IMG/VR virus record: IMGVR_UViG_3300035145_003993
Span: 124,001 to 188,000 of that record
DNA: 64,000 nucleotides
Strand: one strand, 5' to 3'
A program made the translations under genes and the position numbers. Within the stretch, counting starts at the first letter, position 1. The number at the start of each line of letters is the position of its first letter. This document shows positions 9,237-60,926 of this stretch, piece after piece. The notes beneath the pieces are model-generated. The model saw only the letters and a program-made list of their open reading frames with translations, was not told where the DNA came from and ran no database searches.

Positions 9237-9803
9237 TTACCCAAATACACCACACTTAATTAAAGATTGTAATACATCAAGTAAAGCTTTTGTTGATGAT
9301 TCTTTACAAGTAGAACCAGTAAAATCCATTAAAGGACGCAAGCATTTTTCAATATCATCAGGATTAGTCATTAAATGTTGAGAGCAACTATCATATGAAT
9401 CTTTACAAGGCACATTTTGTATTGACTGTGATCTTATTTTATTATAATGGTCTAAAGACTCAGGGTGTGCGCAATGAAATTTAATATGGTCTACGTAATC
9501 CTGAGTTGTAACTTGATTATCGTTATCTAAATCAAAATGAGAATATAAGTCTTCAGGTGTAACATAGCCGTCATTATTAGGATCTAGATCATGATGTGTG
9601 TGTCCTTTTAATCCATCTAATTTTTTCGTTTCTAAATGATCATGATCATAATATTCTTCTTCAGAGTGTCCTGGACAATTACATGGATCACAATAGCATT
9701 CTCCACAAACTTCTTCACATTTACAAGGATTATATCCACATGCAAAACAAACATTTGAAGAAGCTTTGTCTAAAAATTCTTTTATAAGTTTTCTATCGTT
9801 CAT
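9237..9803 (-). CDS. Cys-rich, His/acid-rich, EF-hand-like protein
   Basis: CxxCxxxPCxC twice; DPNNDGYVTPED and DLDNDNQVTTQD loops. Confidence 0.65.
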   Translation of the reverse strand: MNDRKLIKEFLDKASSNVCFACGYNPCKCEEVCGECYCDPCNCPGHSEEEYYDHDHLETKKLDGLKGHTHHDLDPNNDGYVTPEDLYSHFDLDNDNQVTTQDYVDHIKFHCAHPESLDHYNKIRSQSIQNVPCKDSYDSCSQHLMTNPDDIEKCLRPLMDFTGSTCKESSTKALLDVLQSLIKCGVFG

Positions 9804-9814
9804 ATTAAAACCTT

Positions 9815-10990
9815 TCAGTATGAATATAAATATAACTTATCTTTGATCTTTTGTTGATTATCATGTGCTTGTTTTCTACTTAATCCTTTTTTAATACTTT
9901 CAGACATGATTCTTTGTGAATCTACAATATCTTCCATTAATTTACAATGACTTTCAGCATAATCTGTGATAAGATTAATATTTTTAATTACGTATTCTAA
10001 CCTTTTAATAGTAAAACATACAATATGAGCCGCATCTTTAAAAATAATTCTTTCTGAGGATGAGTGTGAAATATCTCTTTCAAGAAGTGTTGTACAGTTT
10101 TCAATTGCTGTTTGAAAATAAGATTTATATAACCTTGTAAGACCACAAATATTTTCTGTTAAGATAGGATTTTTTTTATGTGGCATTGCACTTGATCCTT
10201 TTTGCTTGGCTCTAAAAGGTTCAGCCATTTCATTTATTCCATCTAAACTGTAAATTCTTATATCATAAGAGATTTTTTCAATTGCAAGTACGAGCTGTAG
10301 TATGCCGTAAAAATAATCTAAGTAATGTTGTCTTGGAATAATTTGTGATGAAATAACAGGTTTAAGATCAAGTTGTTCTAAAGCTTTATGTTCACATTCA
10401 ACTGTATTAAAATAGTAATTCCCGGTAGCACCACTAAGTTTTCCTAAGCTTATTTTATCTTTAGATTCAAGTACTGAGTCATATCCTTTTCTCAAAAGAT
10501 GCAGCCAACGATATATTATATCATAATAAGTTTGTATTTCTGCAGCTTTTCCATGTGTTCTAGCAAGTATTCTGTTTTTCGATTCATCAGATTGTAACAG
10601 ATTTGACAAATGAAATATTAAACTACTTGCATAATCTAACACCACTTGTAGACTTTCTTTACACATTATTGATAAAGATGTATCAAGTATATCTGAAGAC
10701 GTTAAACCGTAATGAATCCATCTACCACTCTTGTCTGGAATAGACTCTTCTAACATTTGGACAAATGCTTGGACGTCATGATTAGTTTCTTCTTCTATTT
10801 CTTTCCAACGATTAATATTGATTTTAGCATTTTCTTTAATTACGTTGAATTCATCAGATGTAATTGTTGGATGAGTTATATTGTCTAATTGAGATTCAAG
10901 ATGAGCTAATTCTACTTTTAGCCAAGTGTTTAATTTATTTTCTGTTTTCCAAATATCATAAATTTCTTGAACTTTATATCTTGGTATCAT
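9815..10990 (-). CDS. purB: Adenylosuccinate lyase
   Basis: HYGLTSSDI, RTHGKAA, and the GSSAMPHKKNPILTENICGL signature. Confidence 0.93.
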   Translation of the reverse strand: MIPRYKVQEIYDIWKTENKLNTWLKVELAHLESQLDNITHPTITSDEFNVIKENAKININRWKEIEEETNHDVQAFVQMLEESIPDKSGRWIHYGLTSSDILDTSLSIMCKESLQVVLDYASSLIFHLSNLLQSDESKNRILARTHGKAAEIQTYYDIIYRWLHLLRKGYDSVLESKDKISLGKLSGATGNYYFNTVECEHKALEQLDLKPVISSQIIPRQHYLDYFYGILQLVLAIEKISYDIRIYSLDGINEMAEPFRAKQKGSSAMPHKKNPILTENICGLTRLYKSYFQTAIENCTTLLERDISHSSSERIIFKDAAHIVCFTIKRLEYVIKNINLITDYAESHCKLMEDIVDSQRIMSESIKKGLSRKQAHDNQQKIKDKLYLYSY

Positions 10991-11187
10991 TTTTCCTCTT
11001 TCGTTATTTTTTCTAGAAAGTCTGTAGGGATTTGTACTATTTCTTTATTTAATAAGATTTTAGATAGCGTTTTGCTTTCTTGATAAGAAGAATTTTTTCC
11101 ATAAGATATAAAAATCCCAACATCACATCTACTGTTTGAAAACTTATTTGTATTAAGAACAAGATCACCTTTAGTTAAGATGCCCAA
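10987..11187 (-). CDS. Small SH3/KOW-like protein
   Basis: LTKGDLV...DVGIFISY; sits between purA and purB. Confidence 0.55.
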   Translation of the reverse strand: MGILTKGDLVLNTNKFSNSRCDVGIFISYGKNSSYQESKTLSKILLNKEIVQIPTDFLEKITKEEK

Positions 11188-12371: not shown

Positions 12372-12374
12372 AAT

Positions 12375-13494: not shown

Positions 13495-14466
13495 TTACAT
13501 ATTAGTTAAAAAATCTTTTCTATATTTTAATAATGCTTTTTCTTTTGCTTTAGACTCTAACACTATATCAACTGTTTTCCCACAGCTGTTAAAAGGTTTA
13601 TAGTAATAGTTCGAATGTGCCGCTGCAGATCTTATTGATGGATCTTCAAATTCTTTTTTTCCGTTAGAATGATGACAAGTAGGTCTTATACTCTTTGGCC
13701 AAGAATCGTAAGCCATTTCGAAAGATTCTTGATAAGAAGCATCTTGAGGCCCTAATGAATAGTGATGAGAATCAAAAACGATTGGAACTTTTATTTTTTT
13801 ATAAATATTTTCATAAAGAAATTTTGCACTAAACATTGAAGGTCTATCATCATTTTCAACAGTTAGCCTTGATTGAACTGAAGGTGTGAGTTTTTTAAAA
13901 TTATTAATAAAGTTATTTGCAGCTAATTGTAAATCTCCACCACAAGAAGATCCTAAATGAATATTAATTTTCGACCAATGATTTTGATCTAAACCCATTA
14001 AATCGAATAACTCACCATGCATTTCTAAATCAACAATACAATTTTTTACTACATTTTCTTTTTCAGATGCTAAGCAATTAAATTGACCAGGATGAAAAGA
14101 AACTCTTTGATTAATAACTTTTGTATAATTACCTGCCATTTTAAGATAATGACAAATTTCTTCATAATCTGGTAAATCTTTAAGATTATATTCACTAGCC
14201 CATGGAGTTAAACAAGAAGAAATCCTAAAAACTTCAATATTATTTTTATAATTCCAATTAAAAATTGGAAGTAAGTCTTTAACATTTTGAAGAACAATTT
14301 TTGAAACGTATGGTAAACCTTTTTTTAAAAAGGTAGCTTTTCTCATTGTTCTAGAATTAAATATATCTTTTTCTCTTAATTCCATATTAAGACAAGCATA
14401 TCCAAACCTATTCATAATAAATGTTCCTTCGTTTAATAAAAATTTGAATTTTTTTATATTATACAA
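13495..14466 (-). CDS. uvsE: UV damage endonuclease
   Basis: RFGYAC, RVSFHPGQF, RLTVENDD, FDSHH, HSNYY, VLESKAKE; true start is probably the internal MNRFG. Confidence 0.9.
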   Translation of the reverse strand: MYNIKKFKFLLNEGTFIMNRFGYACLNMELREKDIFNSRTMRKATFLKKGLPYVSKIVLQNVKDLLPIFNWNYKNNIEVFRISSCLTPWASEYNLKDLPDYEEICHYLKMAGNYTKVINQRVSFHPGQFNCLASEKENVVKNCIVDLEMHGELFDLMGLDQNHWSKINIHLGSSCGGDLQLAANNFINNFKKLTPSVQSRLTVENDDRPSMFSAKFLYENIYKKIKVPIVFDSHHYSLGPQDASYQESFEMAYDSWPKSIRPTCHHSNGKKEFEDPSIRSAAAHSNYYYKPFNSCGKTVDIVLESKAKEKALLKYRKDFLTNM

Positions 14467-14496: not shown

Positions 14497-15564
14497 TTAA
14501 GGTTCTTCGTATATTTTTTTATCATATACAGGGTGATTATAAGATAAATCTAAAGCTTTAATACTCTTAGGACTAAGATTGTTATTCCTAAGATCAGCTT
14601 TATCGATTCCAACATTAGCCAAACTAAAGTCATGATATAAATTTTCTTTTGTGTGATTCACTAATCTATTAAGATCTTCGTATGTATTTAATAAAGATAA
14701 ATCTGATTCGTAATTAGGATTAAGATTATCAAACATGAAATATTCTGGATTTACATAATCTATAGTTCTTTTTTCTTTAATATTTTCAATCACGTCTATA
14801 AGTAATTCGTAATTAACTACATTTGTTGGAATCATAGAAAATCTAAATCTTTCTTCAATAAACTCTACTAAATATTTTAAAAAGTCGTCTGAAGCTCTGA
14901 CAAATCCTTCTGTATTATTTTGTAATTTAAAAATCGAACTTAATGTAGGAAAAATTTTCTTAATATCAGAAACAGAAAGACTTGAATCGAAGAAAGGAAC
15001 TTCGTTTTCATCAACACCATATATACGTTCAAGTTTTTCTGTAATGATCCATTCTGGATGAGGATCTAGATCGTATAAATAAGTTTTAGTAAAAAGTTGT
15101 GAAGATCCTTTTCCATACTGGCCTCGAGACACATTTAATTCTTTTAAATTAGAAATAGCACCTGCTTTATCCATGGATGCTTTTAATACAATATTATCAA
15201 CGTCGTTGATGTTAAAAACATATCTTTCCGCACCTTCAGCTATAAAATCTAATTCAAGTTCAGAAATTCCATATTTTTCAAGATAATATTGTCTATCTCT
15301 TAATCTATCTTCTCGATTGAATTCTAAATCCGGAATATTTTTTGTCTGTGAAAGAAGTAATAGTGTGTGTCCAAACTCATAAAAAGTATCTTGGCGTTTT
15401 TCATTTCCTTTATGCCAGTTTGAATATTCTGGGTCTAGAACTTCATTTTTTATCAACTTTAAATTTTCAGAAAGATTTTGTATAATACTATCATCTCTCA
15501 TATTAAGATCTTCATTTATATATTCTTTCCAAAGATTTATAAATACACTTTTATTATATATCAT
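14497..15564 (-). CDS. Protein-kinase-like fold protein with N-terminal leader
   Basis: AEGAERYVF (G-loop), IVLK, ELNV, WIITEKL, HDFSLANVG, KALDLSY. Confidence 0.6.
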   Translation of the reverse strand: MIYNKSVFINLWKEYINEDLNMRDDSIIQNLSENLKLIKNEVLDPEYSNWHKGNEKRQDTFYEFGHTLLLLSQTKNIPDLEFNREDRLRDRQYYLEKYGISELELDFIAEGAERYVFNINDVDNIVLKASMDKAGAISNLKELNVSRGQYGKGSSQLFTKTYLYDLDPHPEWIITEKLERIYGVDENEVPFFDSSLSVSDIKKIFPTLSSIFKLQNNTEGFVRASDDFLKYLVEFIEERFRFSMIPTNVVNYELLIDVIENIKEKRTIDYVNPEYFMFDNLNPNYESDLSLLNTYEDLNRLVNHTKENLYHDFSLANVGIDKADLRNNNLSPKSIKALDLSYNHPVYDKKIYEEP

Positions 15565-15595: not shown

Positions 15596-15603
15596 TATTT
15601 ATA
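15596..15603 (+). promoter_or_regulatory. Candidate late-promoter motif TATTTATA
   Basis: 17 nt upstream of the + strand cluster start at 15620. Confidence 0.4.
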
Positions 15604-15619: not shown

Positions 15620-15904
15620 ATGCTTCCATTTAAAGAAAAAATTATCGAAGAAAATGAAAATTTTATACTAGTTCAAAGAAACTTTATGTCAATGATGTCA
15701 GAAGAAGAATTAAATTGGCATAAGGATAAGGAAGAAAGAGAAGTATTTTTAGTTGAAGGCGATGGTTGGTATTTACAAATGGAAAATGAAATCCCTGTTT
15801 TAATGCAGAAAGGATCTGTTTTTAAAATACCTAAAGAAACATGGCATCGAATAATTAATAAAAACGGCACAAATTTAATAATCAATGTGAGAAAATATAA
15901 ATGA
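15620..15904 (+). CDS. Cupin-fold protein
   Basis: WHKDKEERE...IPKETWHRII. Confidence 0.7.
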   Translation: MLPFKEKIIEENENFILVQRNFMSMMSEEELNWHKDKEEREVFLVEGDGWYLQMENEIPVLMQKGSVFKIPKETWHRIINKNGTNLIINVRKYK

Positions 15905-16479
15905 GTTTTAATCTTTTAAAAGAAATGATAAAAGAAATTATTTTAGTTGAATCAAATAAACCTTCAAAAGAATTAGAAAAATCTAAGTATGCTTTACTTA
16001 ATGGTGAAAAAGTAGAGATTATTGCTGCTGATGGACCTGGTGAGTATTCGATTGTTAGAAAGAAAAATTCTGATAAGGGTGAAGATAAAGAAGAATTTGC
16101 TTTAATGAAAGATCTTAAACCTTTAAAAAACGTAAACGAAAGAAAAGATCCTAAAGTAGGAACAGGGAAAAAACCAAAAGGAAGTGACAGAAGATTATAT
16201 ACTGACGAAAATCCAAATGACACAGTAAGAGTAAAGTTTAGAACTGCTTCAGATATTAGAAAAACTTTGTCAAAAAAATCTTTTAAATCAAAATCTCACG
16301 CTAGACAGTCTCAAATTATTAATTTAATACATCAAAGAGTTAGAGCTGCTTATAAAAACGCTAAAGATCCTAAAGTAAAAGCTCGTCTTAAAAGGGCATA
16401 CGAATATGCATGTGAAAGAAAAGAAGCATCAAAAAGAAAAACTTTAAGAATTAAAAAGAAAAAGCGAGAATTAAATTGA
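15901..16479 (+). CDS. Basic phage protein with leader
   Basis: ATGA coupling; GTGKKPKGSDRRLYTDENP motif recalled from marine phage hypothetical proteins. Confidence 0.75.
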   Translation: MSFNLLKEMIKEIILVESNKPSKELEKSKYALLNGEKVEIIAADGPGEYSIVRKKNSDKGEDKEEFALMKDLKPLKNVNERKDPKVGTGKKPKGSDRRLYTDENPNDTVRVKFRTASDIRKTLSKKSFKSKSHARQSQIINLIHQRVRAAYKNAKDPKVKARLKRAYEYACERKEASKRKTLRIKKKKRELN

Positions 16480-16739
16480 ATTTTAAATTATTAGAAAACT
16501 TTATAAAAGAAGTAATTTTAGATGAAACTAAAAAGAAAAAATCTAAAAGAAAAAAGAAGAAAAAAAGACCTGGAAAAAAAGAGTATTATAAAGGGACTAA
16601 GGATAGTAATAAATCAATGGCTTATGAAATTAATAAGTGTAGTCCAAAAGGAAAACCAAAAGGTTGGAAAGCTCCTAAATCTTGTTATGATTATTGGGAT
16701 GCAGATAAAAAATACGACAAATCAAAAGGTAAAAAATGA
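16476..16739 (+). CDS. Small Lys-rich protein with leader
   Basis: TTG start overlapping the previous stop; leader shared with the next gene. Confidence 0.65.
   Translation: MNFKLLENFIKEVILDETKKKKSKRKKKKKRPGKKEYYKGTKDSNKSMAYEINKCSPKGKPKGWKAPKSCYDYWDADKKYDKSKGKK
16491..16559 (+). repeat. 69-nt direct repeat, copy 1
   Basis: 4 mismatches versus 16754..16822; encodes LENFIKE(V/I)ILDE(T/V)KKKKSKRKKK. Confidence 0.9.
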
Positions 16740-17077
16740 AAAACTTAATTATTTTAGAAAACTTTATAAAAGAAATAATTTTAGACGAAGTTAAAAAGAA
16801 AAAATCTAAAAGAAAAAAGAAGGAGAATTCTAAAAAATTATCTGAAAAGATTAAAACAACTTTAAGAAAAAAGGCAAAAGATTCAAATATGCCATTAGGT
16901 GCTTTAACTTCTGTATATAAAAAAGGATTAGCAGCTTGGCTAACAGGACATAGACAAGGAATTCCTCAACATCAATGGGCAATGGCAAGAGTTAATAGTT
17001 TTATTAGAGGAGGAAAAACTAGAAAAGTTGACAAAGCCGAATGGAAAAAGGTTCAGAATTTTAGAAAGAAGAAGTAA
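16736..17077 (+). CDS. Basic protein with leader and a conserved viral domain (DUF5824-like)
   Basis: LRKKAKDSNMPLGALTSVYKKGLAAWLTGHRQGIPQHQWAMARVNSF. Confidence 0.75.
   Translation: MKNLIILENFIKEIILDEVKKKKSKRKKKENSKKLSEKIKTTLRKKAKDSNMPLGALTSVYKKGLAAWLTGHRQGIPQHQWAMARVNSFIRGGKTRKVDKAEWKKVQNFRKKK
16754..16822 (+). repeat. 69-nt direct repeat, copy 2
   Basis: See copy 1. Confidence 0.9.
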
Positions 17078-17082
17078 AATAA

Positions 17083-17706
17083 ATGAAAAATTTATTGTTA
17101 GAAACAAATATAATCTCAGAAGGATTAAGATTTCATTTAATTGAAAATATAGGTGTTGAAAATAATATATATAGACCTGGTTCAATAAAATATTTTAATC
17201 TTTTTAGAGAAGTTAGAGACTTAAATAAAATAGGTTTATATAATCTTAGTTTAAAAGAAAAATACTATATTAATGAAACAGATATAGGTGAATGGGGATT
17301 TTATGGAAACAATTTAGTTCCTTTAGATTATCCTATTTTAGAAGGAGATGAGTCTTTAAAATCTAGTATTCCTGTTGAAATATTAAACGAAAAAAAGAAG
17401 AAAAAACCAAAGAAAAAAGGAAACTTCTATAAAGGAAAAAAAGTTCAATTAAATAAACCAAAAAGAGGTGGAAGAAAAAAATATTATGTATACGTCAGAA
17501 ACCCAGAAACAGGAAATATTAAAAAAGTAGAATGGGGAGCTAAAGGTATGTCTGTTGGTATTCATGATGAAGCAAGAAGAAAATCATTTGCAGCTCGTCA
17601 CAGATGTCATTTAACAAAAGATAAAACTACAGCAAGTTATTGGGCATGTAGAACGGGAAGATATCCGCATTTAACTGGCGGGAAAAAGAAATATACTTGG
17701 TGGTAA
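17083..17706 (+). CDS. Phage protein with leader and basic C-terminal domain
   Basis: KKYYVYVRNPETGNIKKVEWG...RRKSFAARHRC...YWAC motif recalled from large-phage hypothetical proteins. Confidence 0.75.
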   Translation: MKNLLLETNIISEGLRFHLIENIGVENNIYRPGSIKYFNLFREVRDLNKIGLYNLSLKEKYYINETDIGEWGFYGNNLVPLDYPILEGDESLKSSIPVEILNEKKKKKPKKKGNFYKGKKVQLNKPKRGGRKKYYVYVRNPETGNIKKVEWGAKGMSVGIHDEARRKSFAARHRCHLTKDKTTASYWACRTGRYPHLTGGKKKYTWW

Positions 17707-17707: not shown

Positions 17708-18196
17708 TTATTCTTTGTCATATCCAACAAAATGTACACCTTTGAAATGATCTTTTAAAAATGAATTTAGTTTTTTATTCATATCGAAAGATTCAATAGG
17801 TTCATCATTTTTTTCATTTTGTATGTCTTTCCAAACATATGTTAAAAAATCTTCTTCTAGTTTATTGTCTAATATTTGTTGAATCTCTTTGTTAATTCTA
17901 AAGTTATCTAAAAAACTATTAGTCTTTTTTCCTTTTTTTGAAAAATTCCACATACCTAGTAGTATGTCTCCTACATTAGTAACAGTATCAACACCAGGTA
18001 ATACGCCTGCTATTGTTTTTGCTATTTTAAAAACTTGTTTATTTTTATTTTTTAGTTTTGCATTAGCTAAAAGAGCTCTTAAGTCTCCGTAAGTTTTTAT
18101 GTCTTCTATATTTTTAACTTTAAAATTAACTTTATTTTCTTCATTGATTTTTTGTATTTCAAGTCTTATATAGTTTTCTAATATATTTTTTTTCAT
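17708..18196 (-). CDS. Hypothetical protein with leader
   Basis: MKKNILENYIRLEIQKINEE; central amphipathic segment. Confidence 0.7.
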   Translation of the reverse strand: MKKNILENYIRLEIQKINEENKVNFKVKNIEDIKTYGDLRALLANAKLKNKNKQVFKIAKTIAGVLPGVDTVTNVGDILLGMWNFSKKGKKTNSFLDNFRINKEIQQILDNKLEEDFLTYVWKDIQNEKNDEPIESFDMNKKLNSFLKDHFKGVHFVGYDKE

Positions 18197-18215: not shown

Positions 18216-18227
18216 TATTTATAAATA
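18216..18227. promoter_or_regulatory. Palindrome TATTTATAAATA, candidate bidirectional late promoter
   Basis: Perfect 12-nt palindrome between divergent genes 18196(-) and 18250(+). Confidence 0.4.
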
Positions 18228-18249: not shown

Positions 18250-18615
18250 ATGAAACCATATTATTACATTGCTGAAGTTGTTTCTGTTTATGATGGGGAT
18301 ACATGTACTTGTGTAGTTGATTTAGGATTTAAAACTTCAATAAGAATAAAGGTTCGTCTTATTGGGATTGATACGCCTGAAGTTAGAACAAAGGACAAAT
18401 CTGAAAAGGTGAGAGGATTAGAAACAAGAGACTGGCTCAGAGAAAAAATACTAAATAAAAAAGTTTTACTACATACTAAAGAAAGAGGAAAGTTTGGACG
18501 ATGGTTAGGAACTATTTGGTCTTTAGAACAAGATAAACCTGAGTTTGAAAACAGCTATAATAAAAAATTAATCAATGAAGGTTTTGCAAAAGAATATTGG
18601 GGTGGAAAAAGATGA
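18250..18615 (+). CDS. Thermonuclease (SNase family)
   Basis: VYDGDT, VRLIGIDTPE, GKFGRWLG. Confidence 0.9.
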   Translation: MKPYYYIAEVVSVYDGDTCTCVVDLGFKTSIRIKVRLIGIDTPEVRTKDKSEKVRGLETRDWLREKILNKKVLLHTKERGKFGRWLGTIWSLEQDKPEFENSYNKKLINEGFAKEYWGGKR

Positions 18616-22638: not shown

Positions 22639-22891
22639 TTTTTCTCTTCATTAATTCAATAACTGACTCCTGAAACTGGGGAGACTTAGCAATATTAAAT
22701 ATGTCTTCACTAGAGTGTTCCATTCCGTATTTTTTCGAAATGTTTGCTGCAATTTTAACAAAAGACCTATTAATTATATTTCTAACTGTTGAATGGTTCA
22801 TTTTATGACCACACTTTGTCATAATATTTGCAATATCGTATAAACCTAGACCTTCTTCATTTTTAACTGTTACATATTTTTTATTTTTCAA
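22616..22891 (-). CDS. HTH protein resembling detached sigma region 4.2
   Basis: [11 protein letters not shown]...[17 protein letters not shown]; TTG start overlaps the sigma stop by 11 nt. Confidence 0.65.
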
Positions 22892-23633
22892 GATATTTTC
22901 TCATTTCTTTAGTCACAGGAAAGTTTTTAATATTATTGTCGTTATTGTTAATTCCAAATCTAAGTCTAATTATTTTTTCTTCTTTAGGAGTTAATAAAGA
23001 TAAACTTTCTTCAACAATTTGATTTAGTTCTTTATGTTCTAAAGATTTTTCAGGATTCGAAAATATTGACTCATCTTCTATTTTATTTAAAACACTGAAT
23101 GTATTCGAATCACTATCTTCTCTTTCAATAGAAGAAATATTTTTATTTGACTTTAATGTGTATTTAACTTTTTTAGATGGTTCATCAACTAATTCAGATA
23201 TTTCTTCTATTGAAGGATTTCTTCCATTTTCTTCTTCAAATTTTAAAATTTCTTTTTTAATTTTAGAATTTAATAACCTTGAGTGAGTAGGAACTTTTAT
23301 ATTTGAAGATTTTTCATTTATATATTGTAATGCTGATTGTTTTATCCACCAGCAAGCGTATGTGCTAAATTTGTAACCTAACTCAGGATCAAATTTGTCA
23401 ACAGCTTTAAGAAGTCCTATTGTACTTTCTTGAATAAGATCATCAAAATCTAAACCATTTCTATGATATTTTTTTGCAATTGAAATAACTAATCGATAAT
23501 TTGACTCAATTAGCTTTTTTCTTGCTTTTTCATCACCTTTTTTAATTCTTCTTGATAATTCAATTTCCTCTTTTTTCTTTAATAAGGGATTTTCTTTAAT
23601 AACTTTAGAGAAACTAGAGTGAATATTAACCAT
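22881..23633 (-). CDS. Sigma-70 family factor (regions 1.2-4.1), lacking the region 4.2 HTH
   Basis: [55 protein letters not shown], then stop after 21 residues. Confidence 0.9.
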
Positions 23634-31044: not shown

Positions 31045-31752
31045 TTAAGAATTAATTTTTTTTAAAAATTCAATTATTTCTTTTTTCTCTTGGATAGACT
31101 CTTCGACTTCTGTATCGACATTACCTACCTTTATTACTGAAATTGGTGATGCCAATTTTTCTTCTGCTTTCTCTTTTGGCATATCTTGTAAATCTTCTAA
31201 TTGATCTTTTCTACTTTGTGATCTTTTTAATTCACTTTTTGTTGCTTCTGATTTTCCAATAATAATTTTTAAATCTTTAGGGCTATAAGCTGCTTTTCCG
31301 TTTACGTCAAGTAAAGTTATTTGTACGAGACCTTTTAAGAATACGTGTAAAGCCTTTTTTTCGTCACCTGTAAGCTTGTTAAAATATTTTTCTAAATCTT
31401 CATGAACACTTTTCTTAGAAAGAGAATGCGACGCTCTAAACTGATTTAGAATACTTTTAAGTTTATCAAAATTATCAGCATCTGCTAAGTTAATAGTAGA
31501 AGGAGATTCATCTGGAGTATCATCAATCATTTCTTCTTTATCGTCAACTCTTTCTTCTTTATTATCATCTCCTATTTCAGATGAGTCATTAGATTCTTCT
31601 TCATCTTCTTTGAGATTTTTTTCTAAATCTTGATGATAAGTTCCTCTACTTCTAGAGTCAGCAATAAATTCATTTTGATTTTCTTTAACTTTTTCCCAAG
31701 AGTTTTCTTCTTTTAATATTTCTTCAAGTTTGTTTAAAATATCAAAATTCAT
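31045..31752 (-). CDS. Acidic hypothetical protein with leader-like N-terminus
   Basis: ORF track. Confidence 0.7.
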   Translation of the reverse strand: MNFDILNKLEEILKEENSWEKVKENQNEFIADSRSRGTYHQDLEKNLKEDEEESNDSSEIGDDNKEERVDDKEEMIDDTPDESPSTINLADADNFDKLKSILNQFRASHSLSKKSVHEDLEKYFNKLTGDEKKALHVFLKGLVQITLLDVNGKAAYSPKDLKIIIGKSEATKSELKRSQSRKDQLEDLQDMPKEKAEEKLASPISVIKVGNVDTEVEESIQEKKEIIEFLKKINS

Positions 31753-31936: not shown

Positions 31937-32287
31937 CTATTTGTATATAATTATTTTAATTTTATAATTATTTTCAAAAACGTTATATAATTTATATTTT
32001 AATAATGATTTTTTACCATTAAATATAGATTCTTCAAAGTCTTCTAACCCAATTGAAATGTTAATTTCTTTATTTATAAATAACTTCTGTAAAGACTTTT
32101 TATTAATTTTGAATGTAACCTTATATTTACTTTTTGAATTAACGTATGATAAAATAGAAAACTTTTCATTAAATAACTTAATCCATAGATTATTGTTATT
32201 AATATTAGAAGAAGAAAGATTATCTAAATCAATTATATCTTCTAGATCCTTAGACAAAAATAATCTTTCTTCTTCACTATTCTGCAT
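31937..32287 (-). CDS. Hypothetical protein
   Basis: ORF track. Confidence 0.55.
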   Translation of the reverse strand: MQNSEEERLFLSKDLEDIIDLDNLSSSNINNNNLWIKLFNEKFSILSYVNSKSKYKVTFKINKKSLQKLFINKEINISIGLEDFEESIFNGKKSLLKYKLYNVFENNYKIKIIIYK

Positions 32288-32624
32288 AATAATACATTAC
32301 ATCTTTTTTGATTTTGTCTATATCTTTTGAAGCTTCTAATTCTAGTTCTGAAACTCTTCCTGAATAAGAATGGATAATAATTCCTACAGATAATTTTCTA
32401 AATCTCAATTCAATATCAGCATCACATTCATTAGTATATTTTAGTATTTCTACAATAAATGACTCAAAAAACTTTACACTTTCAAACAAATATACTTTTT
32501 TTAATTTCTTCTCTTCGACATTTATCCATTTAGACTTTTTTACTTTTAAAGGTTTAAAACTGTCTTGAACCTTTAAATTAGAATTTTCATTTAAATAGTT
32601 TTGCATCAGGTTTTTTAAATACAT
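32277..32624 (-). CDS. Pterin-4a-carbinolamine dehydratase-like fold protein with leader
   Basis: W...KLKKVYLFESV..F...I.......D.EL....V.I.IHSYSGRVSELELE pattern; catalytic His-His absent. Confidence 0.55.
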   Translation of the reverse strand: MYLKNLMQNYLNENSNLKVQDSFKPLKVKKSKWINVEEKKLKKVYLFESVKFFESFIVEILKYTNECDADIELRFRKLSVGIIIHSYSGRVSELELEASKDIDKIKKDVMYYYAE

Positions 32625-35600: not shown

Positions 35601-35774
35601 TCCATTAGTTAAATTTAAAGATCTAACTAAACATTTGAATTCTTCAAAAAGAACTTTATTTTTATTTAAATCACTCTCGCTTAATCTTGAAAGAGCATAA
35701 AACTTTCTTTGATAATCTTTGTTTTTAAAAGAAAGAAGTTTATTAACTCTATATTTTAGTTTGTTATTCGTCAT
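32640..35774 (-). CDS. Large hypothetical protein (1044 aa)
   Basis: Long ORF; acidic blocks, SRRRRRS run and basic tail. Confidence 0.75.
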   Translation of the reverse strand: MTNNKLKYRVNKLLSFKNKDYQRKFYALSRLSESDLNKNKVLFEEFKCLVRSLNLTNGDLPNEKYIFEFLKNNITNDFIKEIKESIDLKYSKSIRDFDSLINEELDKVNYVNKELDLKLENILIKSIEDKIDLLESRTSRRRRRSLDNIEGPSQEELEMIQQQLDDEFGSEDLDSVQQKKDEEDFSEIDLDDLPDSDLKPAPSLSQPVESIYKKVKSKEQKRFSKGPSNNKIAKALGFTGTGKYVAGQKSAVLQPWDQLVVYVSNKLKNSGVSQENDLSLLAKRKLWIIMSIEVYLTLESQSNMMLGISDSEKDRMISSLDKAQKLNLKNAVSSFRRSVGLGKSLSSEEIRSIIVDVKEELSRGDFDLESDLIREQVLLRLWSRSGSSRNKSIQELKQELDIMYPLNQEYTADFDLEPRLSDDELEKLKQQNIEFDKRISDDPDQDDNFYIEEEINVTKELEDYSSKNRNLSLTVFELQKYMKQISDDIKRLNDLYKKSTERVNPDIFNPIEEDEFGNIINIPDTIPAEDLSEEEENEIKEILERLSYKDKINIINVDKKRKFYRDLYDNYASIDDVIKKTQEHVSKFGLDKKENLTDVDISHMSYGQFASGAGVRQLAQKAWSQELFYSCNPDEKARIYSAAADRWTERLVKLDLIDDKSFVRVPSKNEDEADVAISSSQLKQLELQGKYKRSKKLEDVSDYFSEISKILTDTKLLQRYFDEARDDSVAQEISEKINSIKILSDDDEASYNELLKDLSKNDKGFSSYLVLEASLGNQSGFSLYVIGLLDNFYKKKIQGRTKNSIIKATKEYFDTHYGKDILAPGLSPSSPRIEQIKKDEGQNIFVSIANVVQKLSGLGSSGSKGISKSSAKSTRDSQRDYFLNPGKGYLIGKVEKLNSNRDEDDQLKSFFGGEFNRKDVEKLLDDMFSPNGIIGSVYEDLKILTKTTADELINHIYSMSDSDIDESIIKAFASSEFKNRTDFDVLIPKVFDKIGKDSKEALENYKELYGSLLIGKDFADYLDSEFGLETIKLPKTRKSRKKTK

Positions 35775-36148
35775 TATTTTTGACCTTTATTAATAATTTG
35801 TGTTGCTGATTTCCAAATTTTTTCTGCTAAATCATCTGAAATGTCTTTATTATCATCTAATATTGATATCATAGCAGAAGATAACTCAACAGATTTCGGG
35901 ACATAATTTTTATCTCTTACATTATGATTTTTTTTTAACATTGATACAGAGACAAAGTCATCTGCTGTAAGAGGAGTATTTAATTCTAAGTCTAGTTCTT
36001 TTTGATCTCCGTTTAATTTAGATCCTGTAGTATCAAACATTGTTGTTCGACTGCTTGTAAATCCATCTGGAAACATTTCTTTTATGCTATTTTCAAACAA
36101 AATGTTTTTAACAATATCTCTAAGATCTTTTTTTGTCAAGTTACTCAT
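35774..36148 (-). CDS. Hypothetical protein with leader
   Basis: MSNLTKKDLRDIVKNILFEN. Confidence 0.65.
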   Translation of the reverse strand: MSNLTKKDLRDIVKNILFENSIKEMFPDGFTSSRTTMFDTTGSKLNGDQKELDLELNTPLTADDFVSVSMLKKNHNVRDKNYVPKSVELSSAMISILDDNKDISDDLAEKIWKSATQIINKGQK

Positions 36149-36513: not shown

Positions 36514-36760
36514 TAATATCTTTAAGATTGTTTACTTTTTTATTTTTTAATTCATCAATTCTTTCGTGAACAAGTTCTTTTAAGTAAAGATCGTCATTAA
36601 CATATTTTTCGGCCATTAATCTAAAAAATTTTTGCATTGACATTTCATCTAAAAAAAGCTTTGTCCTAAGTTTCTTGTGTAATTCTCCAGGAAACTCAAC
36701 ATGAATTGTTTTATTATTAATAATTTTTTTGACTTGTTTATTTAATCGTTTATTTTTCAT
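36458..36760 (-). CDS. Ribbon-helix-helix-like DNA-binding protein
   Basis: KTIHVEFPGELHKKLRTKLFLDEMSMQKFFRLMAEKY. Confidence 0.6.
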   Translation of the reverse strand: MKNKRLNKQVKKIINNKTIHVEFPGELHKKLRTKLFLDEMSMQKFFRLMAEKYVNDDLYLKELVHERIDELKNKKVNNLKDINEKDLYSAIEENSPFKKD

Positions 36761-37557: not shown

Positions 37558-38280
37558 TTACAATATTTGTGATATTTTATCTGCTTTTTTAATTCTATCT
37601 TCAATAACTGACCATTTAAGTTCTTTCATCATTGCGAATACATACATTTTTCTATTTTTTAAATAGTCCCTATAATAACTGTGTTCCCAACAATCCATTA
37701 CAATAACTGGTATCATTCCAATCATTACATTTAAACTATGTAAATCTATAATAGTATTAACATATCTTTTAAGATATATGTCATAATAAGTAACTGCCCA
37801 ACCATTTCTAGCTGAAAGACAACATGCAATAAAATCTTCTTGCCACGCATCAAAACTTCCAAAGTCTCTAGCAAGCCTCATATAGCTTAATGAATTCATA
37901 GTAATATTACTATTTAAATCAGAAATATTTTCAAAATATAATCCATGAAGAAATGCTGCATTGTGATTATATGTTTCGTCTACTTTTAAGCTTCTAAATG
38001 ATGAATGATTTAAATTAGCTAAAGATTTATCAACGCCATCAAGATTAGCAGAAATTTCATTTAATTGTTTAGCATAACCTTCTAATAATTCTTGATGAGA
38101 TTTTTTAGTTTTTGAAGATAAAAGTTCAGTCTGTAAATCAAACTTTCCTGCTTCAATAACATAAGCCTCTGATAGAAGACTTTTTGGATTACTTGTTTCT
38201 TTCTTATTGTTTTTATTCAATCCATTTTCGCTCAAAGATGAATCTACAGCTTCTTTAATAATTTTATCTAAATTTTTCAT
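37558..38280 (-). CDS. Fe/Mn superoxide dismutase-like protein with N-terminal leader
   Basis: SHQELLEGY, FLHGLYF, DFGSFDAW, GWAV and DCWEHSYY metal-ligand motifs. Confidence 0.8.
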   Translation of the reverse strand: MKNLDKIIKEAVDSSLSENGLNKNNKKETSNPKSLLSEAYVIEAGKFDLQTELLSSKTKKSHQELLEGYAKQLNEISANLDGVDKSLANLNHSSFRSLKVDETYNHNAAFLHGLYFENISDLNSNITMNSLSYMRLARDFGSFDAWQEDFIACCLSARNGWAVTYYDIYLKRYVNTIIDLHSLNVMIGMIPVIVMDCWEHSYYRDYLKNRKMYVFAMMKELKWSVIEDRIKKADKISQIL

Positions 38281-39275: not shown

Positions 39276-39752
39276 ATGTCTTATTTGTTATTAGAAAATT
39301 ATATTAAATCTATTATAGAAAAAAATACAATTAAAGAACTACATGTTTTTGATTTTGATATGACTTTATACAATCATAATAAAAAAGATTGGTTTGAAGA
39401 TGTCATGTTAAATTTAAAAAAATCTTTAAAAGATCCAAGTGTAAGAGTTATTTTATGCACAGCAAGAGAAAAAAGCGAAAATTTTATATTAAAAACTGAG
39501 AAGTTGCTTTCTACACGTAAAATGTCTCTTGAAGACTTTAATGAGTGTTATTTTAAATCAATACATAGAAAAGAAAAAACTCCGATTTATAAATCTAATG
39601 TCATTTTAGATGAAGTTAGTTCTAACACTAATATTGTAAAAGTAAAGTTTTGGGATGATCGTGAAGATACTCTTAATCAAGTTAAAAAAGATTTAAAAAA
39701 ATATAACGAAAATATAATTTATATTCCTGTTAATCCTTTAAAAATTGCATAA
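39276..39752 (+). CDS. HAD-superfamily phosphatase with leader
   Basis: VFDFDMTL, LCTAR, FWDDR. Confidence 0.8.
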   Translation: MSYLLLENYIKSIIEKNTIKELHVFDFDMTLYNHNKKDWFEDVMLNLKKSLKDPSVRVILCTAREKSENFILKTEKLLSTRKMSLEDFNECYFKSIHRKEKTPIYKSNVILDEVSSNTNIVKVKFWDDREDTLNQVKKDLKKYNENIIYIPVNPLKIA

Positions 39753-43155: not shown

Positions 43156-43365
43156 ATGTACCAAATTTTAGAAAATTATATACAACTTGTATTTGAAAAC
43201 GAAAAAAATAAAAACAAAACGTTTAAAGATATACTTAATAGTTTAAAAAATAGTCAAAATCCTAAAAAGGTACTAAGAAATACAGATCCTATAGAAAGAA
43301 ATACAGATCAAATAGGATTTGACCAATTAATTAAAAAATCTAGTAATTCTAATCAAACGCGTTAA
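43156..43365 (+). CDS. Short leader-bearing ORF, possible remnant
   Basis: MYQILENYIQLVFENE; RBS present; overlaps the dnaE stop. Confidence 0.45.
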   Translation: MYQILENYIQLVFENEKNKNKTFKDILNSLKNSQNPKKVLRNTDPIERNTDQIGFDQLIKKSSNSNQTR

Positions 43366-46463: not shown

Positions 46464-46492
46464 AATATAATACAATTAGTTAATATTTACAC
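46464..46492 (-). promoter_or_regulatory. Phage promoter GTGTAAA-N16-TATATT for the dnaE C-fragment
   Basis: -35 lies in the last codons of the endonuclease gene. Confidence 0.65.
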
Positions 46493-47426
46493 TTTCATTA
46501 ATTAAATCAATTGTATTATCAATTTCATTTTCCCATATAATCAAGTAGTTATAGTTTCTTTTTTTTGCTATCTTCATTTTGTAAGAATCAGCATTCCAAA
46601 TATCACCTGCTTTTATTTTTCCTCTTGGGAAATCAAGAATGCTATTTTCATTATATAGAGAAGGGTGTGCGTGCCAAAATAGACCATGGCATTCAATGAT
46701 TAAATTAAACTTTGGCAGATAAAAATCATATATGTAACATCTTTTGTTGTATAATAATTCATCTTTTGTCAAATTAATTCGATATTGAATAGAATAGTCA
46801 ATGTTATTTTCTCTTAATAATCTTTCAATTCTTTTTTCTGTTTTAGGTTGTGATGTTTTTTTAAGAGCACCAATTGCACCTTTAACAGCTCTTTCTGAAA
46901 TTATTGCATTTGCATTATCCTTACTTAATCCTTTCTTAAGCCAAAACTCAATGCAAAATGGAGAATTTGATCGTTTATAGTTAGATAAACTTTCTTTTGC
47001 ATCTTCAATATTTTCCGTTTTTTCTATCCAATACTCTAAAGTTTGTTTTTGGTTGTAAGGTTTACCTGACTTTTTTCTAGTTTTAACTGTTCCTTTTTGT
47101 CCTTTTAAAGAAGTCTTCAAATAGTAACTTTCAATTTCTTTTATTGAAGTGTTTTTTGGAAATTTAAACTGACTTCTGAATGCTGTTGAAGTTTTTTGAT
47201 TATCTACATGAAGCTTAAAACCGATTTTGTCTTTTAAAAGAATAGAAAAAGTTTGCTGTGATATATTTAACTCATTAAAGCATTTTCTATTGTCACGATT
47301 AATCATTTGATATAACATTGAAAACGAGTAAAGTTTATTAATAAAACCTTGTATTTCTTCTTTTGAGTAATAAGAAAAAAGTATTTCTTCTCTAATTTTC
47401 CATATATTTGTTTTTTTTGTTTTCAT
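46476..47426 (-). mobile_element. Free-standing Vsr-like homing endonuclease between the dnaE halves
   Basis: C-terminal YDFYLPKFNLIIECHGLFWH...IIWE; repeated EYWIEK/EFWLKKG segments. Confidence 0.85.
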
Positions 47427-47463: not shown

Positions 47464-48381
47464 TCAGAGGTTAATATTAATAATTATATCACCTTTAACA
47501 ATATCTTTTGTATCAATCCATCCTTTGTCTTTAACAAGAACACGATGATCAGGTGTAAGTTTGATTTCGTTACCTTCTTTGTCTTTAATTCTCATAAGCT
47601 TAGCACCTCCTCGGGTTTTGTCACCCCAGATTACTTTTTTAAATTCAGCTTTGCTAGTATATTCATTATAAGAAAGAACTTGGATTTCTTCACCTTTATT
47701 AAATCTTTCTACAACTTCTTTAATAGATAGATTTCCAGATGAAGTTTGTAAAGTTGTGTCAGGATGAAGACAAGCTGTAGATATGTGTAATCCTTCACCA
47801 TGTTCTTGAAGCATTTGAAAATCAATACGTGGGTATCTATAAAAACCATATTTATACGATTTTTTAACTAAAGTAAATAAATTGTGAAGACCTTTTTGGT
47901 TTTTTGCTGTAACTACCAAATGATATCTTCTTTTCCACTCATCTTTAAGGATATCAACATTTTTTGTTTCATCTTCGTCTTCAACAACTAATCCGCCACT
48001 TTCATCATCTGCGTCAATATCAACTTTTTCTTTTGATTTCCTTTCAGCAGCAGCGGCAGATTTTGCGTCTTTTACTGCTTGTTTGTGAGCAGCATATTCT
48101 TCAGACCATTGTTGAAGTGAAGGAACAAAATAAAATTCAACTCCATAAATTTGTCTATAATTCCTTCCTGATTTTTGCATTCTAATTGTATGAGATCTTG
48201 CATGAGCAAGACCATTACCGTTACCATGGTCTGTTAGTGCCCATGCATCCATACCCTGAGATTCAGACAAAACAAAATCAATATGATCAGATGGGTATCC
48301 TAATCCATCGAATGTTGAAAACGTGCTGTGTGCATGAAGACCGACAAATCTATCTGGTGGTGTTATTAAATCAATAGACAA
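47464..48381 (-). CDS. dnaE: DNA polymerase III alpha, N-terminal PHP domain plus N-intein
   Basis: LHAHSTFSTFDG, ALTDHG, IYGVEFY, YHLVV, ISTA|CLHPDT. Confidence 0.95.
   Translation of the reverse strand: MSIDLITPPDRFVGLHAHSTFSTFDGLGYPSDHIDFVLSESQGMDAWALTDHGNGNGLAHARSHTIRMQKSGRNYRQIYGVEFYFVPSLQQWSEEYAAHKQAVKDAKSAAAAERKSKEKVDIDADDESGGLVVEDEDETKNVDILKDEWKRRYHLVVTAKNQKGLHNLFTLVKKSYKYGFYRYPRIDFQMLQEHGEGLHISTACLHPDTTLQTSSGNLSIKEVVERFNKGEEIQVLSYNEYTSKAEFKKVIWGDKTRGGAKLMRIKDKEGNEIKLTPDHRVLVKDKGWIDTKDIVKGDIIININL
47467..47772 (-). mobile_element. Split intein N-fragment (102 aa) of DnaE
   Basis: Block A CLHPDT, block B LTPDHRVL, GW...GD. Confidence 0.93.
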
Positions 48382-57868: not shown

Positions 57869-57873
57869 ATTTA

Positions 57874-58638: not shown

Positions 58639-58688
58639 ATGGTTACATACCTTTCTTATTTTTTATAATTTTATTAATTTGTTTTATT

Positions 58689-58717: not shown

Positions 58718-58723
58718 TAAAAA

Positions 58724-59506
58724 TTAATCAATATTGTAATATAATTTTTCTGCCCAAGGTATAACATCCCATTTTTTTGCTGAAATGTTGTGGTGTCCTA
58801 CAATACTATATTTAGAAGCTTCTTTCACAGACATTACATCTAAACTTTCACAAACTGGTTTGTCTGTGAGATTAGTTGCTTCTCTTAATGATTGTAAAAA
58901 TTGTTTGCAAACATCTGCAAAATCGTCACCAATCATTACTAATTTTCTTCCTTTTACTCTATTATCTGGTATTTTACAAACTTGAAGTGATGCATCTGGG
59001 TACCAATTTTTAGTTTTTTCCCAATATTTTTCATCTGGATGCATGCAAATATCAATACCAATAGAGTATTTATTAAATTTTCCTGCATGATAAGCAGCTA
59101 AACCTGTATCTAAGCATTGTAAAATTTCATATTCACCTGTTTTATGATTTCTTCCAATTAAAAAATGTGAAGAAACGTGTCTTCCTCTTGCAAGATTAAA
59201 AACATTATAACAGTGTCTAGAATTTAATCCTCCCCAATGTACACAAATAGATGTAGGATCAGATTTTCTTTTATACCAATTTTTTGTACCATCATCAAGT
59301 TCGTATAAAGGCGCAGACCAATCAATTTCTAAAGGAGAATCAATTGGAACGACTTTTCCCATATGCATTATGATAGGCATCCCATAATATTGTCTAACTG
59401 CTCTATGAGTTGCTGGTCCATATATACCATCTGCTTTAACACCTACTTCTTGTTGAAGTGATATTACATATTCTTTGTTTTTATTTAAAGTACTAAACTG
59501 TTCCAT
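58724..59506 (-). CDS. Endolysin: PG-binding domain plus N-acetylmuramoyl-L-alanine amidase (type 2)
   Basis: LQQEVGVKADGIYGPAT; VHW, SSHFLI, YHAG, SIGIDI, GHHN...D. Confidence 0.88.
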   Translation of the reverse strand: MEQFSTLNKNKEYVISLQQEVGVKADGIYGPATHRAVRQYYGMPIIMHMGKVVPIDSPLEIDWSAPLYELDDGTKNWYKRKSDPTSICVHWGGLNSRHCYNVFNLARGRHVSSHFLIGRNHKTGEYEILQCLDTGLAAYHAGKFNKYSIGIDICMHPDEKYWEKTKNWYPDASLQVCKIPDNRVKGRKLVMIGDDFADVCKQFLQSLREATNLTDKPVCESLDVMSVKEASKYSIVGHHNISAKKWDVIPWAEKLYYNID

Positions 59507-59928
59507 TATCTATTATTACCTTCAATTCTATCTTTAATTCTATCTTTAATTATTTCTTCCTTGTTAGGATAAGATTTTATAACTATTTTAAGACATTTTT
59601 CTGTTAATTTTATTAAAGATTTTACATCATCATCAGTTATAGGTTCATTTTTATTTTTTTTAAAACTTTTTTTAAGTTTAAAAAGACTTTCATCATCTGT
59701 AGACATTTCTAAATATTCTAAATAAGAATTAATATTTAACAATAATGAATTAATCATTCTGTCTGCAGATTCTGGTGTTTTTAAACTTAGTTTAACAAAT
59801 CCTATAGCTTCATCATAGTCTAAATCCATCTGCTTTTCACTAATTTCTGTAATGATTTCTTTATTTGGCAAATTTTCATCTAGTAGAAATTGTCTCCATT
59901 GATTAAACATTTCGTATATATTTTTCAT
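59506..59928 (-). CDS. Hypothetical protein with leader
   Basis: MKNIYEMFNQWRQFLLDEN. Confidence 0.65.
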   Translation of the reverse strand: MKNIYEMFNQWRQFLLDENLPNKEIITEISEKQMDLDYDEAIGFVKLSLKTPESADRMINSLLLNINSYLEYLEMSTDDESLFKLKKSFKKNKNEPITDDDVKSLIKLTEKCLKIVIKSYPNKEEIIKDRIKDRIEGNNR

Positions 59929-59939
59929 AAATAATCCTT

Positions 59940-60926
59940 TTAATAATCTAAATTTTCTTCGTAATCATCATATTCATCAGAATCACCAAATTCAGTAAAT
60001 GCAGTTGCTGTATTTAAAACATATTTTCCTAAGACATTTTGTAAGTCTTCTGTTCCAACTTCATTTTTTGCTCTATTTATCATATCCTCATTGATATTAC
60101 TACCGTCGAGAGCGCCACAAATTTTCAAAGATCCAAGAGCTGTCATTAGATTTATTATTTCGTCACTTGCATTTTGAGTTCTTAGAAAATTAATTTTTTC
60201 TTGAACGCTATCTTTAATTCTTTTCTTTTCAGAAGGTTTTACATTATAGACACCTCCTTGAGAAAATAAATCGTTTTCATCTTCAGACTGCTCTAAATTT
60301 AGTGGCTGTCTAAAGAAACTAATAACATCATCATTTTTTCCTGAAATGACATTTTGACTCCACTCTTCTAGGCTATCAAATTTATTAATACCTAAATCAC
60401 CTTCAATATCATCTTTATTTAAGCTCAATTCTTCATAGACATCATCTGATAAGTTTAAAGAATTTGACAGTAATTCTTGAAATAAAAGAACTAAAGGATT
60501 TTCTTGATTTTCTTGATTTATAGGATTAGAATCGATTCCAAAAACAGATTTAATAGCAGATAATTCTTTGTCTGTAAGTTGTTTAAAATCATTATTATTA
60601 ATCCTTCTAGTAAAAGAATCTTTAACGCTATTAGGAATACTATTAGGATTGCCAATCTCTTTTGCTGTGTTTACTATAGCTGTTTCTTCGTTAGGTTTTA
60701 ATTTAGTATTTTTCCCTATTTGAGTTCCTAAAATACCTGTTGTTCCTATTGCTAATATTAATATTTTTTCTAATGGTGTTGTATTAGAAACGAATTTTTT
60801 TATATTTTTTAAAAAATTTTCGTCTATTCTATTATTTTTATTTAAAATACTTTCAAATATATAGTCTATTTCATCGTAGTAAAATATTTGATTTTTAATA
60901 TAACTTTCTAATAATTGATTTGTCAT
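59940..60926 (-). CDS. Hypothetical protein with leader and one hydrophobic helix
   Basis: MTNQLLESYIKNQI; ILILAIGTTGILG. Confidence 0.7.
   Translation of the reverse strand: MTNQLLESYIKNQIFYYDEIDYIFESILNKNNRIDENFLKNIKKFVSNTTPLEKILILAIGTTGILGTQIGKNTKLKPNEETAIVNTAKEIGNPNSIPNSVKDSFTRRINNNDFKQLTDKELSAIKSVFGIDSNPINQENQENPLVLLFQELLSNSLNLSDDVYEELSLNKDDIEGDLGINKFDSLEEWSQNVISGKNDDVISFFRQPLNLEQSEDENDLFSQGGVYNVKPSEKKRIKDSVQEKINFLRTQNASDEIINLMTALGSLKICGALDGSNINEDMINRAKNEVGTEDLQNVLGKYVLNTATAFTEFGDSDEYDDYEENLDY

Follow-up and report, generated by a model that had tools for sequence, protein, structure and literature searches.

We analysed a 64,000-nucleotide stretch of DNA (the window), which covers bases 124,001-188,000 of the 211,364-bp IMG/VR record IMGVR_UViG_3300035145_003993, derived from an uncultured T4-like phage (27% GC, completeness estimate 84%), and carries genes of replication and nucleotide metabolism. 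The window carries a set of genes whose otherwise unrelated products begin with a short amphipathic leader ending in a hydrophobic residue, any residue and glutamate. A preliminary description of this DNA had listed about 17 such proteins, had assigned them one shared leader and had proposed that it loads a cargo of enzymes into the phage head, as the capsid-targeting sequence (CTS) does for internal proteins in T4. All leader peptides that it quoted were found at the N-termini of open reading frames (ORFs) in the places given, minus-strand genes being sometimes denoted by their low end (e.g. 17708 for 17708-18196(-)). The leader-bearing genes are given below by window position, together with one core-type gene from elsewhere in the genome; G010 is the closest complete relative (239,550 bp), and an arrow marks the boundary after the glutamate.

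15901..16479, plus strand: core-leader gene, 192 residues, net charge +26, leader MSFNLLKEMIKEIILVE
16476..16739, plus strand: core-leader gene, 87 residues, Lys/Arg-rich (40% K+R) behind its leader MNFKLLENFIKEVILDE
16736..17077, plus strand: core-leader gene, 113 residues, leader MKNLIILENFIKEIILDE and a basic DUF5824 domain
17083..17706, plus strand: probable member, 207 residues, basic (+22), short leader MKNLLLE(T), orthologue MRNKLLLEN
17708..18196, minus strand: core-leader gene, 162 residues, orphan cargo, leader MKKNILENYIRLEIQKINE
39276..39752, plus strand: core-leader gene, 158 residues, leader MSYLLLENYIKSIIEKNTIKE, directly followed by the HAD motif-I strand VFDFDMT
43156..43365, plus strand: core-leader gene, 69 residues, leader MYQILENYIQLVFE
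59940..60926, minus strand: core-leader gene, 328 residues, acidic orphan cargo, leader MTNQLLESYIKNQI...IFE
37558..38280, minus strand: Fe/Mn superoxide dismutase (SOD), leader MKNLDKIIKEAVDSSLSE, variable linker, LSE↓AYV, SOD fold
35774..36148, minus strand: probable second-type member, 124 residues, leader ..LTKKDLRDIVKNILFE↓N, ILFEN kept in the G010 orthologue
59506..59928, minus strand: probable W-type member, 140 residues, leader ..NQWRQFLLDE↓N, no orthologue found
14497..15564, minus strand: probable W-type member, 355 residues, leader ..INLWKEYINE↓D, G010 orthologue NVWKDFLNE↓S
9237..9803, minus strand: possible member, 188 residues, Cys-rich and acidic, N-terminus MNDRKLIKEFLD, kept in G010
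31045..31752, minus strand: possible member, 235 residues, N-terminus MNFDILNKLEEILKEE, kept in G010
32277..32624, minus strand: possible member, 115 residues, N-terminus MYLKNLMQNYLNE↓N, kept in G010
Genome 86041-86886, minus strand: core-type gene outside the window, found with the core motif

We count about 25 leader proteins in the genome, about 12-18 of them within the window. The plus-strand operon 15901-17706, in which 17083..17706 is the final gene, encodes four proteins with net charges of +20 to +26. In the first of them, of 192 residues, the leader precedes a small beta-barrel, a disordered stretch that is basic, and a helical domain resembling DUF5824; in an AlphaFold2 model the N-terminal helix spans residues 3-18 and a short second helix residues 23-27, followed by the barrel, the disordered stretch and a confident helical hairpin. 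A paralogue of the W-type gene 14497..15564 lies at genome positions 83810-84790.

Two genes were tried and rejected. The apparent leader of UvdE (13495-14466(-)) is a 17-codon extension from a TTG codon, the true start being an internal ATG (MNRFGYAC) according to both the Pfam match and the G010 orthologue, and 36760-37548 was not kept as a supported member since its N-terminus is not conserved in G010. The product of 9237..9803, which gave nothing above noise with any of the leader hidden Markov models (HMMs) described below, contains CxxC-type repeats and a sub-threshold EF-hand match.

Leader families and their cargo

The core type, written (L/I)LE(N/S)(Y/F)I, was searched for with the strict regular expression [ILV]LE[NSTDK][YFM]I, which matched 8 times in the 278 ORFs of the genome against 0.36 matches expected from residue shuffles. 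Seven of the eight matches stood at residues 4-8, and within the first 10 residues 7 matches compare with 0.023 expected (binomial p = 1.8e-9). The HMM scan of the genome for which the preliminary description had called separated the eight core leaders cleanly, members scoring at least 13 bits and everything else at most 6.4 bits. Two further leader types are present here and recur in related phages, one MKITESKLRSIIRKVIAE-like and one W..FLNE-like. An HMM of the second type, K(I/L)TE..LR..I(R/K)..I.E, built only from related contigs, matched three N-termini outside the window with E values of 3e-5 to 6e-4 and gave a borderline score (8.1 bits) to the window gene starting at 36148; the third type, W(R/K).(F/Y)(L/I).E, is matched weakly by the window genes starting at 59928 and 15564. 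HMMs of MNLQENI..MMG-type and MIKLIDIL-type leaders of the relatives had no match in the genome. The leaders form at least three families, where a single shared leader had been described; the core type stands on seven window genes. Clustering of N-terminal 22-mers brought out another leader-gene array, with six members, at 83.8-88 kb of the genome, and it was this array, together with the related contigs, that defined the two further types; 22 pairs of N-terminal 22-mers from different proteins scored at least 35, compared with 2-9 pairs for internal or C-terminal 22-mers.

Beyond the three families, we used a generic pattern, Phi-x-x-Phi-Phi-x-E (Phi, hydrophobic residue), starting within the first 24 residues. 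It occurred at 26 window N-termini against 8.1 expected (3.2-fold), an excess of about 18 that fits the earlier figure of about 17 proteins, and genome-wide at 50 N-termini against 21.4 expected (p = 9e-8). These numbers bear on the possibility that the leaders are a compositional artefact of a 27% GC genome in which K, N, I, L and E abound at N-termini. In its favor, 104 of the 278 ORFs have [IL]-x-E in their first 24 residues, 8.1 of the 26 window matches are expected by chance, and the apparent leader of UvdE arose from a TTG-extended ORF. Against it stand the excess and the N-terminal position of the core motif, the ratio of only 1.07 for the generic pattern in the structural third of the same genome, the matches of HMMs built from other genomes to N-termini here, and the retention of leaders in orthologues. 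As an account of the leaders altogether we regard an artefact as highly improbable; chance is refuted for the core set and is still a valid explanation for some of the weakest candidates (those at 9803, 31752, 32624 and 37548). The leaders also do not fit Sec, Tat or lipoprotein signal peptides, which have a positive n-region, a continuous hydrophobic core of at least 10 residues and a signal-peptidase site; they are amphipathic with acidic residues at every third or fourth position, and differ from the lipoprotein-like signals found elsewhere in the window (e.g. 892-1719).

The proteins behind the leaders are of several kinds. In the SOD the fold begins 20-35 residues later than in solved SODs, leaving an N-terminal extension; in the HAD phosphatase (39276-39752) the DxDxT strand comes straight after the leader; and DUF5824 makes up the protein encoded from 16736 and the C-terminus of the one encoded from 15901. 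The remaining leader proteins are orphans; most leader proteins had no match in Pfam or PHROGs. Of the cargo named in the preliminary description, SOD, HAD and basic proteins were confirmed. Neither Pfam nor PHROGs bore out its PCD-, kinase- and nuclease-like labels for the listed genes. A fold search with the model of the 192-residue protein gave no significant match (best E 0.26, an SH3/Tudor-like barrel), a protein atlas search with the 162-residue protein found only unnamed viral clusters, and the leader operon had no megablast match among isolate phages. A staphylococcal-nuclease homologue without a leader is encoded at 18250-18615(+).

Could all these proteins be one diverged paralogous family, with the leader as its conserved N-terminal domain? 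True paralogues do occur (16476 and 16736; 15564 and genome 83810; 15901 and 16736, which have DUF5824 in common), and many members stand in arrays. Once the first 25 residues were removed, however, only 1 similar pair remained among 22 candidate cargoes; SOD and HAD are cellular enzyme folds to which the leader was added as an extension, and a given cargo can have one leader in one genome and another elsewhere (see below). We consider a single family very unlikely.

Leaders in related phages

For the DUF5824 part of the 192-residue protein, viral contigs yielded 51 relatives, and metagenomes more than 4,800 matches at E <= 0.001. Nearly all of the best 120 DUF5824 homologues carry the leader M..L(E/K).YI.E.LL.E at the N-terminus, after which come A, K or S, a stretch of Lys and Arg residues and an invariant DPKxGTGKKPKGS. 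More distant loci among the 51 viral ones have other leaders, e.g. MNLQESIRRILREELLNE↓S, MIKLIDILFE↓N and MYLSRNSLRSLILES..LNE↓S, which likewise end in Phi-x-E directly ahead of the DUF5824 domain, while gp40 of podophage HTVC033P has the domain without a leader. In related contigs L038, L040, L042, L047, L031 and L034 a DUF5824-like basic domain was also seen as the C-terminal end of large proteins, which are protein-kinase-like (635-645 residues), cytidylyltransferase-like (1,236 residues) or others of 579 and 778 residues.

The SOD leader, M..L..IIK.A....L.E, is kept in 17 viral orthologues of the enzyme, followed by a linker of variable length and by (I/L/V)(S/N/K)E↓(A/S)YV ahead of the SOD domain; these leaders have diverged in sequence and have kept the helix pattern and the x-E boundary. 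In G010 the three leaders of the second type are conserved in front of unrelated cargoes, BLAST alignments spanning only 20-38 residues. Conversely, the G010 homologues of the cargo of our genes at 85372, which has a W-type leader, and at 86041 carry MILENYIKEVLLFE instead, and our 192-residue gene (15901) corresponds to two genes in G010, each with a leader of its own. Peptide-pattern scans of viral contigs found no relatives of the 328-residue, HAD, 124-residue and 140-residue proteins; when four near-complete relatives were searched in six frames, only two of these proteins had orthologues, both in G010. Related contigs contain arrays of up to a dozen adjacent genes with the same first 10-20 residues and different downstream sequence. 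The leader is a portable module that is exchanged between unrelated cargoes. Another recurrent N-terminus, MK(I/Y/F/V)(I/V)ITE(S/N)(K/Q)..., was noticed on many small genes of L020, L013 and L035, in many cases on the other strand from the leader arrays.

Leaders also occur in a cultured phage, Flavobacterium phage vB_FspM_immuto (NC_055915). Besides an S77 protease (120 bits) and a capsid protein of gp23 type, it has leader genes, at least three of which lie within the first 50 kb: 24569-24994 (MIKLIDLLTES..), 25061-25456 (..FKRMQFLAGIITES..) and 1803-2318. Among six near-complete leader-bearing records S77 was found in five, and the sixth (465 kb) has a gp23-type capsid.

Portability raises the question whether the conserved unit is the peptide or its DNA. 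In our genome the DNA upstream of the leader ATG showed no conservation, and of 162 codon pairs for the same residue 47 differ, compared with 72.5 if codons were chosen at random, which rules out a repeat at the DNA level here. In the relatives most leader types show free synonymous change while the peptide pattern is kept. Given this synonymous change and the unconserved upstream DNA, we concluded that selection acts on the leader peptide. Leaders also undergo recent gene conversion or exchange of cassettes, as suggested by a 42-nt segment coding for MNLQESIRRILREE, which is nearly identical in DNA in 10 gene copies of contigs L013, L020 and L027, down to the rare codons CTA, TCC and AGG, with differing flanks. 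This segment, together with the observed leader swapping and cargo turnover, is what would be expected if the conserved 5' ends were recombination or gene-conversion handles for cassette swapping and the peptide a by-product. The synonymous variation of the other leader types, the absence of a fixed DNA element from this genome, the unconserved upstream DNA and the helix pattern and boundary preserved by the diverged SOD leaders all speak against it, and handles would leave unexplained the N-terminal Phi-Phi-x-E logic that the leaders share with T4 substrates. Exchange at leaders is, moreover, compatible with targeting, which it accompanies in the internal-protein loci of T-even phages. We judge the handles improbable.

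Head genes and candidate capsid targeting

The phage encodes a prohead protease (Peptidase_S77, PF03420, 99.8 bits, genome 9180-9623(-)) that is 39% identical to T4 gp21; its GELDHP and SSRGVGS align with GELNHP and SSRGLGS of T4, so that the His- and Ser-containing motif classes GEL(N/D)HP and SSRG are kept. The major capsid protein belongs to the gp23 family (PF07068, 270 bits) and is 34% identical to that of T4 over the aligned C-terminal part. It has an N-terminal stretch of about 59 residues, then VLRE↓SS, 18 residues ahead of the conserved IVRRVF block, and its propeptide is predicted from this arrangement to be cleaved at VLRE↓SS. Its nearest isolates by capsid protein, Flavobacterium phage immuto, Rhodothermus phage RM378 and Microcystis phage Mel-JY01, place the phage in the distant marine group 'far-T4'. 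The capsid propeptide (gene at genome 2434-4242(-)) has LLENQ where T4 gp23 has IFENQ; this resembles the core-leader start LLEN(Y/F) and may be a coincidence or a hint at the origin of the leader.

Leader-type motifs are also present between the protease and the gene of a scaffold-like protein of 505 residues, in genes that encode small head-module proteins without matches in Pfam and PHROGs. A 141-residue protein begins with MAKVSRSMLKSIVKECLVELLAE↓G, its first 26 residues being identical in G010; a 95-residue protein carries KVTPELIKEMVSEE; and a 291-residue protein has an internal LKEYIEELILSE. A 78-residue G010 protein near the head module of that phage (109,658-109,894), different from the 95-residue protein, has the related KVTPEYLNRLIKEEYS twice, and KVTPE(L/Y)..(I/L)..E repeats are found among the small proteins adjoining protease and scaffold.

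A promoter motif is shared by some of the leader genes and head genes. TATAAAT(A/T), the late-promoter consensus of T4, precedes 6 of the 10 transcription units with leaders and 6 of 128 others (Fisher p = 2e-5), and it also lies upstream of the scaffold-like gene; in G010 it precedes the capsid gene, the scaffold-like gene and 3 of 10 leader units (p = 0.03). Window sites include:

18216..18223, minus strand: TATAAATA, 20-27 nt upstream of the start of 17708-18196
60945..60952, minus strand: TATAAATT, 19-26 nt upstream of the start of 59940-60926
15596..15603, minus strand: TATAAATA, 32-39 nt upstream of the start of 14497-15564

The 53-nt divergent intergenic region between 17708-18196 and 18250-18615 contains overlapping TATAAATA motifs on both strands.

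The N-termini of T4 gp21 substrates (AF158101) resemble the leaders: MKTYQEFIAE in IPII and IPIII, MKTFKEF...ITE in IPI, MAKINELLRE in gp24, MLKEQLIAE in gp22, MNEPQLLIE in gp21 and MEGLIE in gp67. The T4 CTS is well known (PMC3012670, PMC9026906, PMC5694885), and in IPIII targeting depends on residues 4 and 7, processing on residues 8 and 10 (PMC9026906). Our strings LENFIKE, LKEMIKE and KVIAE have the same Phi-x-x-Phi-Phi-x-E spacing as the T4 substrates; LENFIKE shares F, I, E and their spacing with T4 YQEFIAE, the 7-10 residues concerned being too few to establish homology. The likeness to the T4 system, in which gp21 removes the CTS from IPI, IPII, IPIII and Alt, extends to the S77 protease and gp23-type capsid, the N-terminal propeptide of 10-20 residues with equal hydrophobic spacing and an (I/L)-x-Glu end, the identical or similar leader on unrelated cargo, the very basic small proteins among that cargo, the scattering of the genes among metabolic genes and the cargo turnover between relatives. 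The layout of the SOD here matches that of T4 IPI (MKTFKEF, linker, ITE↓A). The two systems differ in that our phage has about 25 leader genes instead of about 4-5, at least three leader types, with more in relatives, leaders that are often longer (15-40 residues, some with a linker) and recognisable enzymes (SOD, HAD) among the cargo, and in that it is known from sequence alone.

Other systems are less close. In encapsulins a short portable peptide brings enzymes, often those of oxidative stress, into a shell of HK97 fold; these peptides are usually C-terminal, have another motif, of GSL type, and stay uncut, and the shell is a cellular nanocompartment, so that the parallel is an analogy only. 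The one shell gene identified in our genome is of gp23 type, no search aimed at the encapsulin family having been made. In the giant phages phiKZ, 201phi2-1 and SPN3US, whose genomes are not closely related to this one, the prohead protease cuts more than 10 head-internal proteins after x-Glu, and a role in targeting proteins into the prohead is ascribed to the propeptides (PMC5694885). Those propeptides are mostly longer than 100 residues without a short shared leader, the published sites being ALE and SLE. The Dar system of P1 (DarA, DarB, Hdf and others) loads several non-structural proteins into a myovirus head for injection (PMC9024508, PMC12810830); the abstracts of these papers mention no common short N-terminal leader, and head type and protease differ.

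We lean towards the view that the leaders are T4-type capsid-targeting propeptides, in a system that would be greatly expanded and diversified. Those prerequisites of packaging that sequence can reveal, namely the protease, the gp23-type capsid, the leader spacing with (I/L)-x-E, the portability and a late-type promoter motif in common with head genes, are all present. We infer a course of core binding, cleavage, packaging and injection. The N-terminal amphipathic helix, with hydrophobic residues at i, i+3 and i+4 and then x-Glu, would dock the new protein on the scaffolding core during prohead assembly; the gp21-type S77 protease would cut after the (I/L/V)-x-Glu that closes the leader or the following linker; and the mature cargo would remain in the head with the DNA and enter the next cell with it. 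The four very basic proteins, probably associated with DNA, would be analogues of the T4 internal proteins. More tentatively, and with somewhat less than even confidence, we propose that a group of marine 'far-T4' phages, abundant and widespread, made T4 targeting a general loading system, in which several interchangeable leader types bring at least two dozen proteins (DNA-coating basic proteins, SOD, phosphatase) into the head for co-injection and also act as exchange points for cargo shuffling.

Several points weigh against this interpretation. Its weak point is virion residence and cleavage of the leader proteins, both of which are predicted from their sequences. The leader set is heterogeneous, and about a third of the loose window matches (~8 of 26) are expected by chance. 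Half of the cargo labels of the preliminary description were not reproduced. The leaders are too short to demonstrate homology to the T4 CTS, and core leaders hold (I/L)-L-E at the very start plus one such site at the end, giving two candidate sites. The 465-kb relative has leader-like genes and no detectable S77. TATAAAT(A/T) may point to late expression together with the head genes; because it is not over-represented across the window as a whole and T4 gp55 as query found no late sigma factor in the genome, we take it as supporting evidence only, and it is missing at 4 of 10 leader units here and at 7 of 10 in G010. We know of no precedent in T4 for the packaging of an SOD or a HAD phosphatase, and a literature search on DUF5824, the leader strings and CTS in marine phages found no publication on these leaders.

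A portable leader under protein-level selection could also be a tag for some other shared fate, for example a docking helix for a common partner like GroEL or an adaptor, or a propeptide that holds proteins inactive until the protease is made late in infection, with no loading into the head. Some cargo enzymes have obvious cytoplasmic roles (SOD, HAD), the phage encodes GroEL, and the coexisting leader types could mean several fates. We nevertheless regard such a tag as unlikely: the leader co-occurs with T4-type heads and is lacking in the podophage homologue, the same motifs are found in head-assembly-module proteins, the leader end fits the gp21 site, the promoter motif is common to scaffold and capsid genes, and S77 proteases, as known from T4, act inside proheads (PMC5694885).

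If the leaders do target proteins to the head, a large and fast-changing protein set, far beyond the handful of T4, would be delivered into the host at infection, and many orphan genes of abundant ocean viruses, e.g. the DUF5824 family, would gain a virion-delivered function. A simple sequence rule could then predict ejected proteins in metagenomes, several natural leader types would be at hand for packaging foreign proteins in phage heads, and a targeting signal would double as a module boundary for gene exchange.

Other features of the window

The window also encodes a sigma-70-family factor with regions 1.2, 2 and 3 (22881-23633(-)) and a GroEL-type chaperonin (23897-25528(-)).

Intein parts were seen in two genes. 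DnaE-type DNA polymerase III alpha comes in two pieces, 47464-48381(-) and 43349-46444(-), the first consisting of a PHP domain that ends in an N-terminal intein half and the second starting with a C-terminal intein half followed by the remaining polymerase; an unrelated ORF of 316 residues (46476-47426(-)) separates the two pieces. The layout resembles that of a split intein spliced in trans, in a phage polymerase. At the start of the ORF of the ribonucleotide reductase large subunit (62866-63927(-)) stands a C-terminal portion of an intein splicing domain, the upstream part lying beyond the window.

A second promoter class reads (A)GTGTAA, about 17 nt, TATAATA, often followed by CATAAGG before the start codon, and is very regular. 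Its sites lie at 89-123 kb of the genome, just upstream of the window, and at window positions 5238, 6741, 48410 and 57874; it heads about 30 small plus-strand genes, which are probably early genes.

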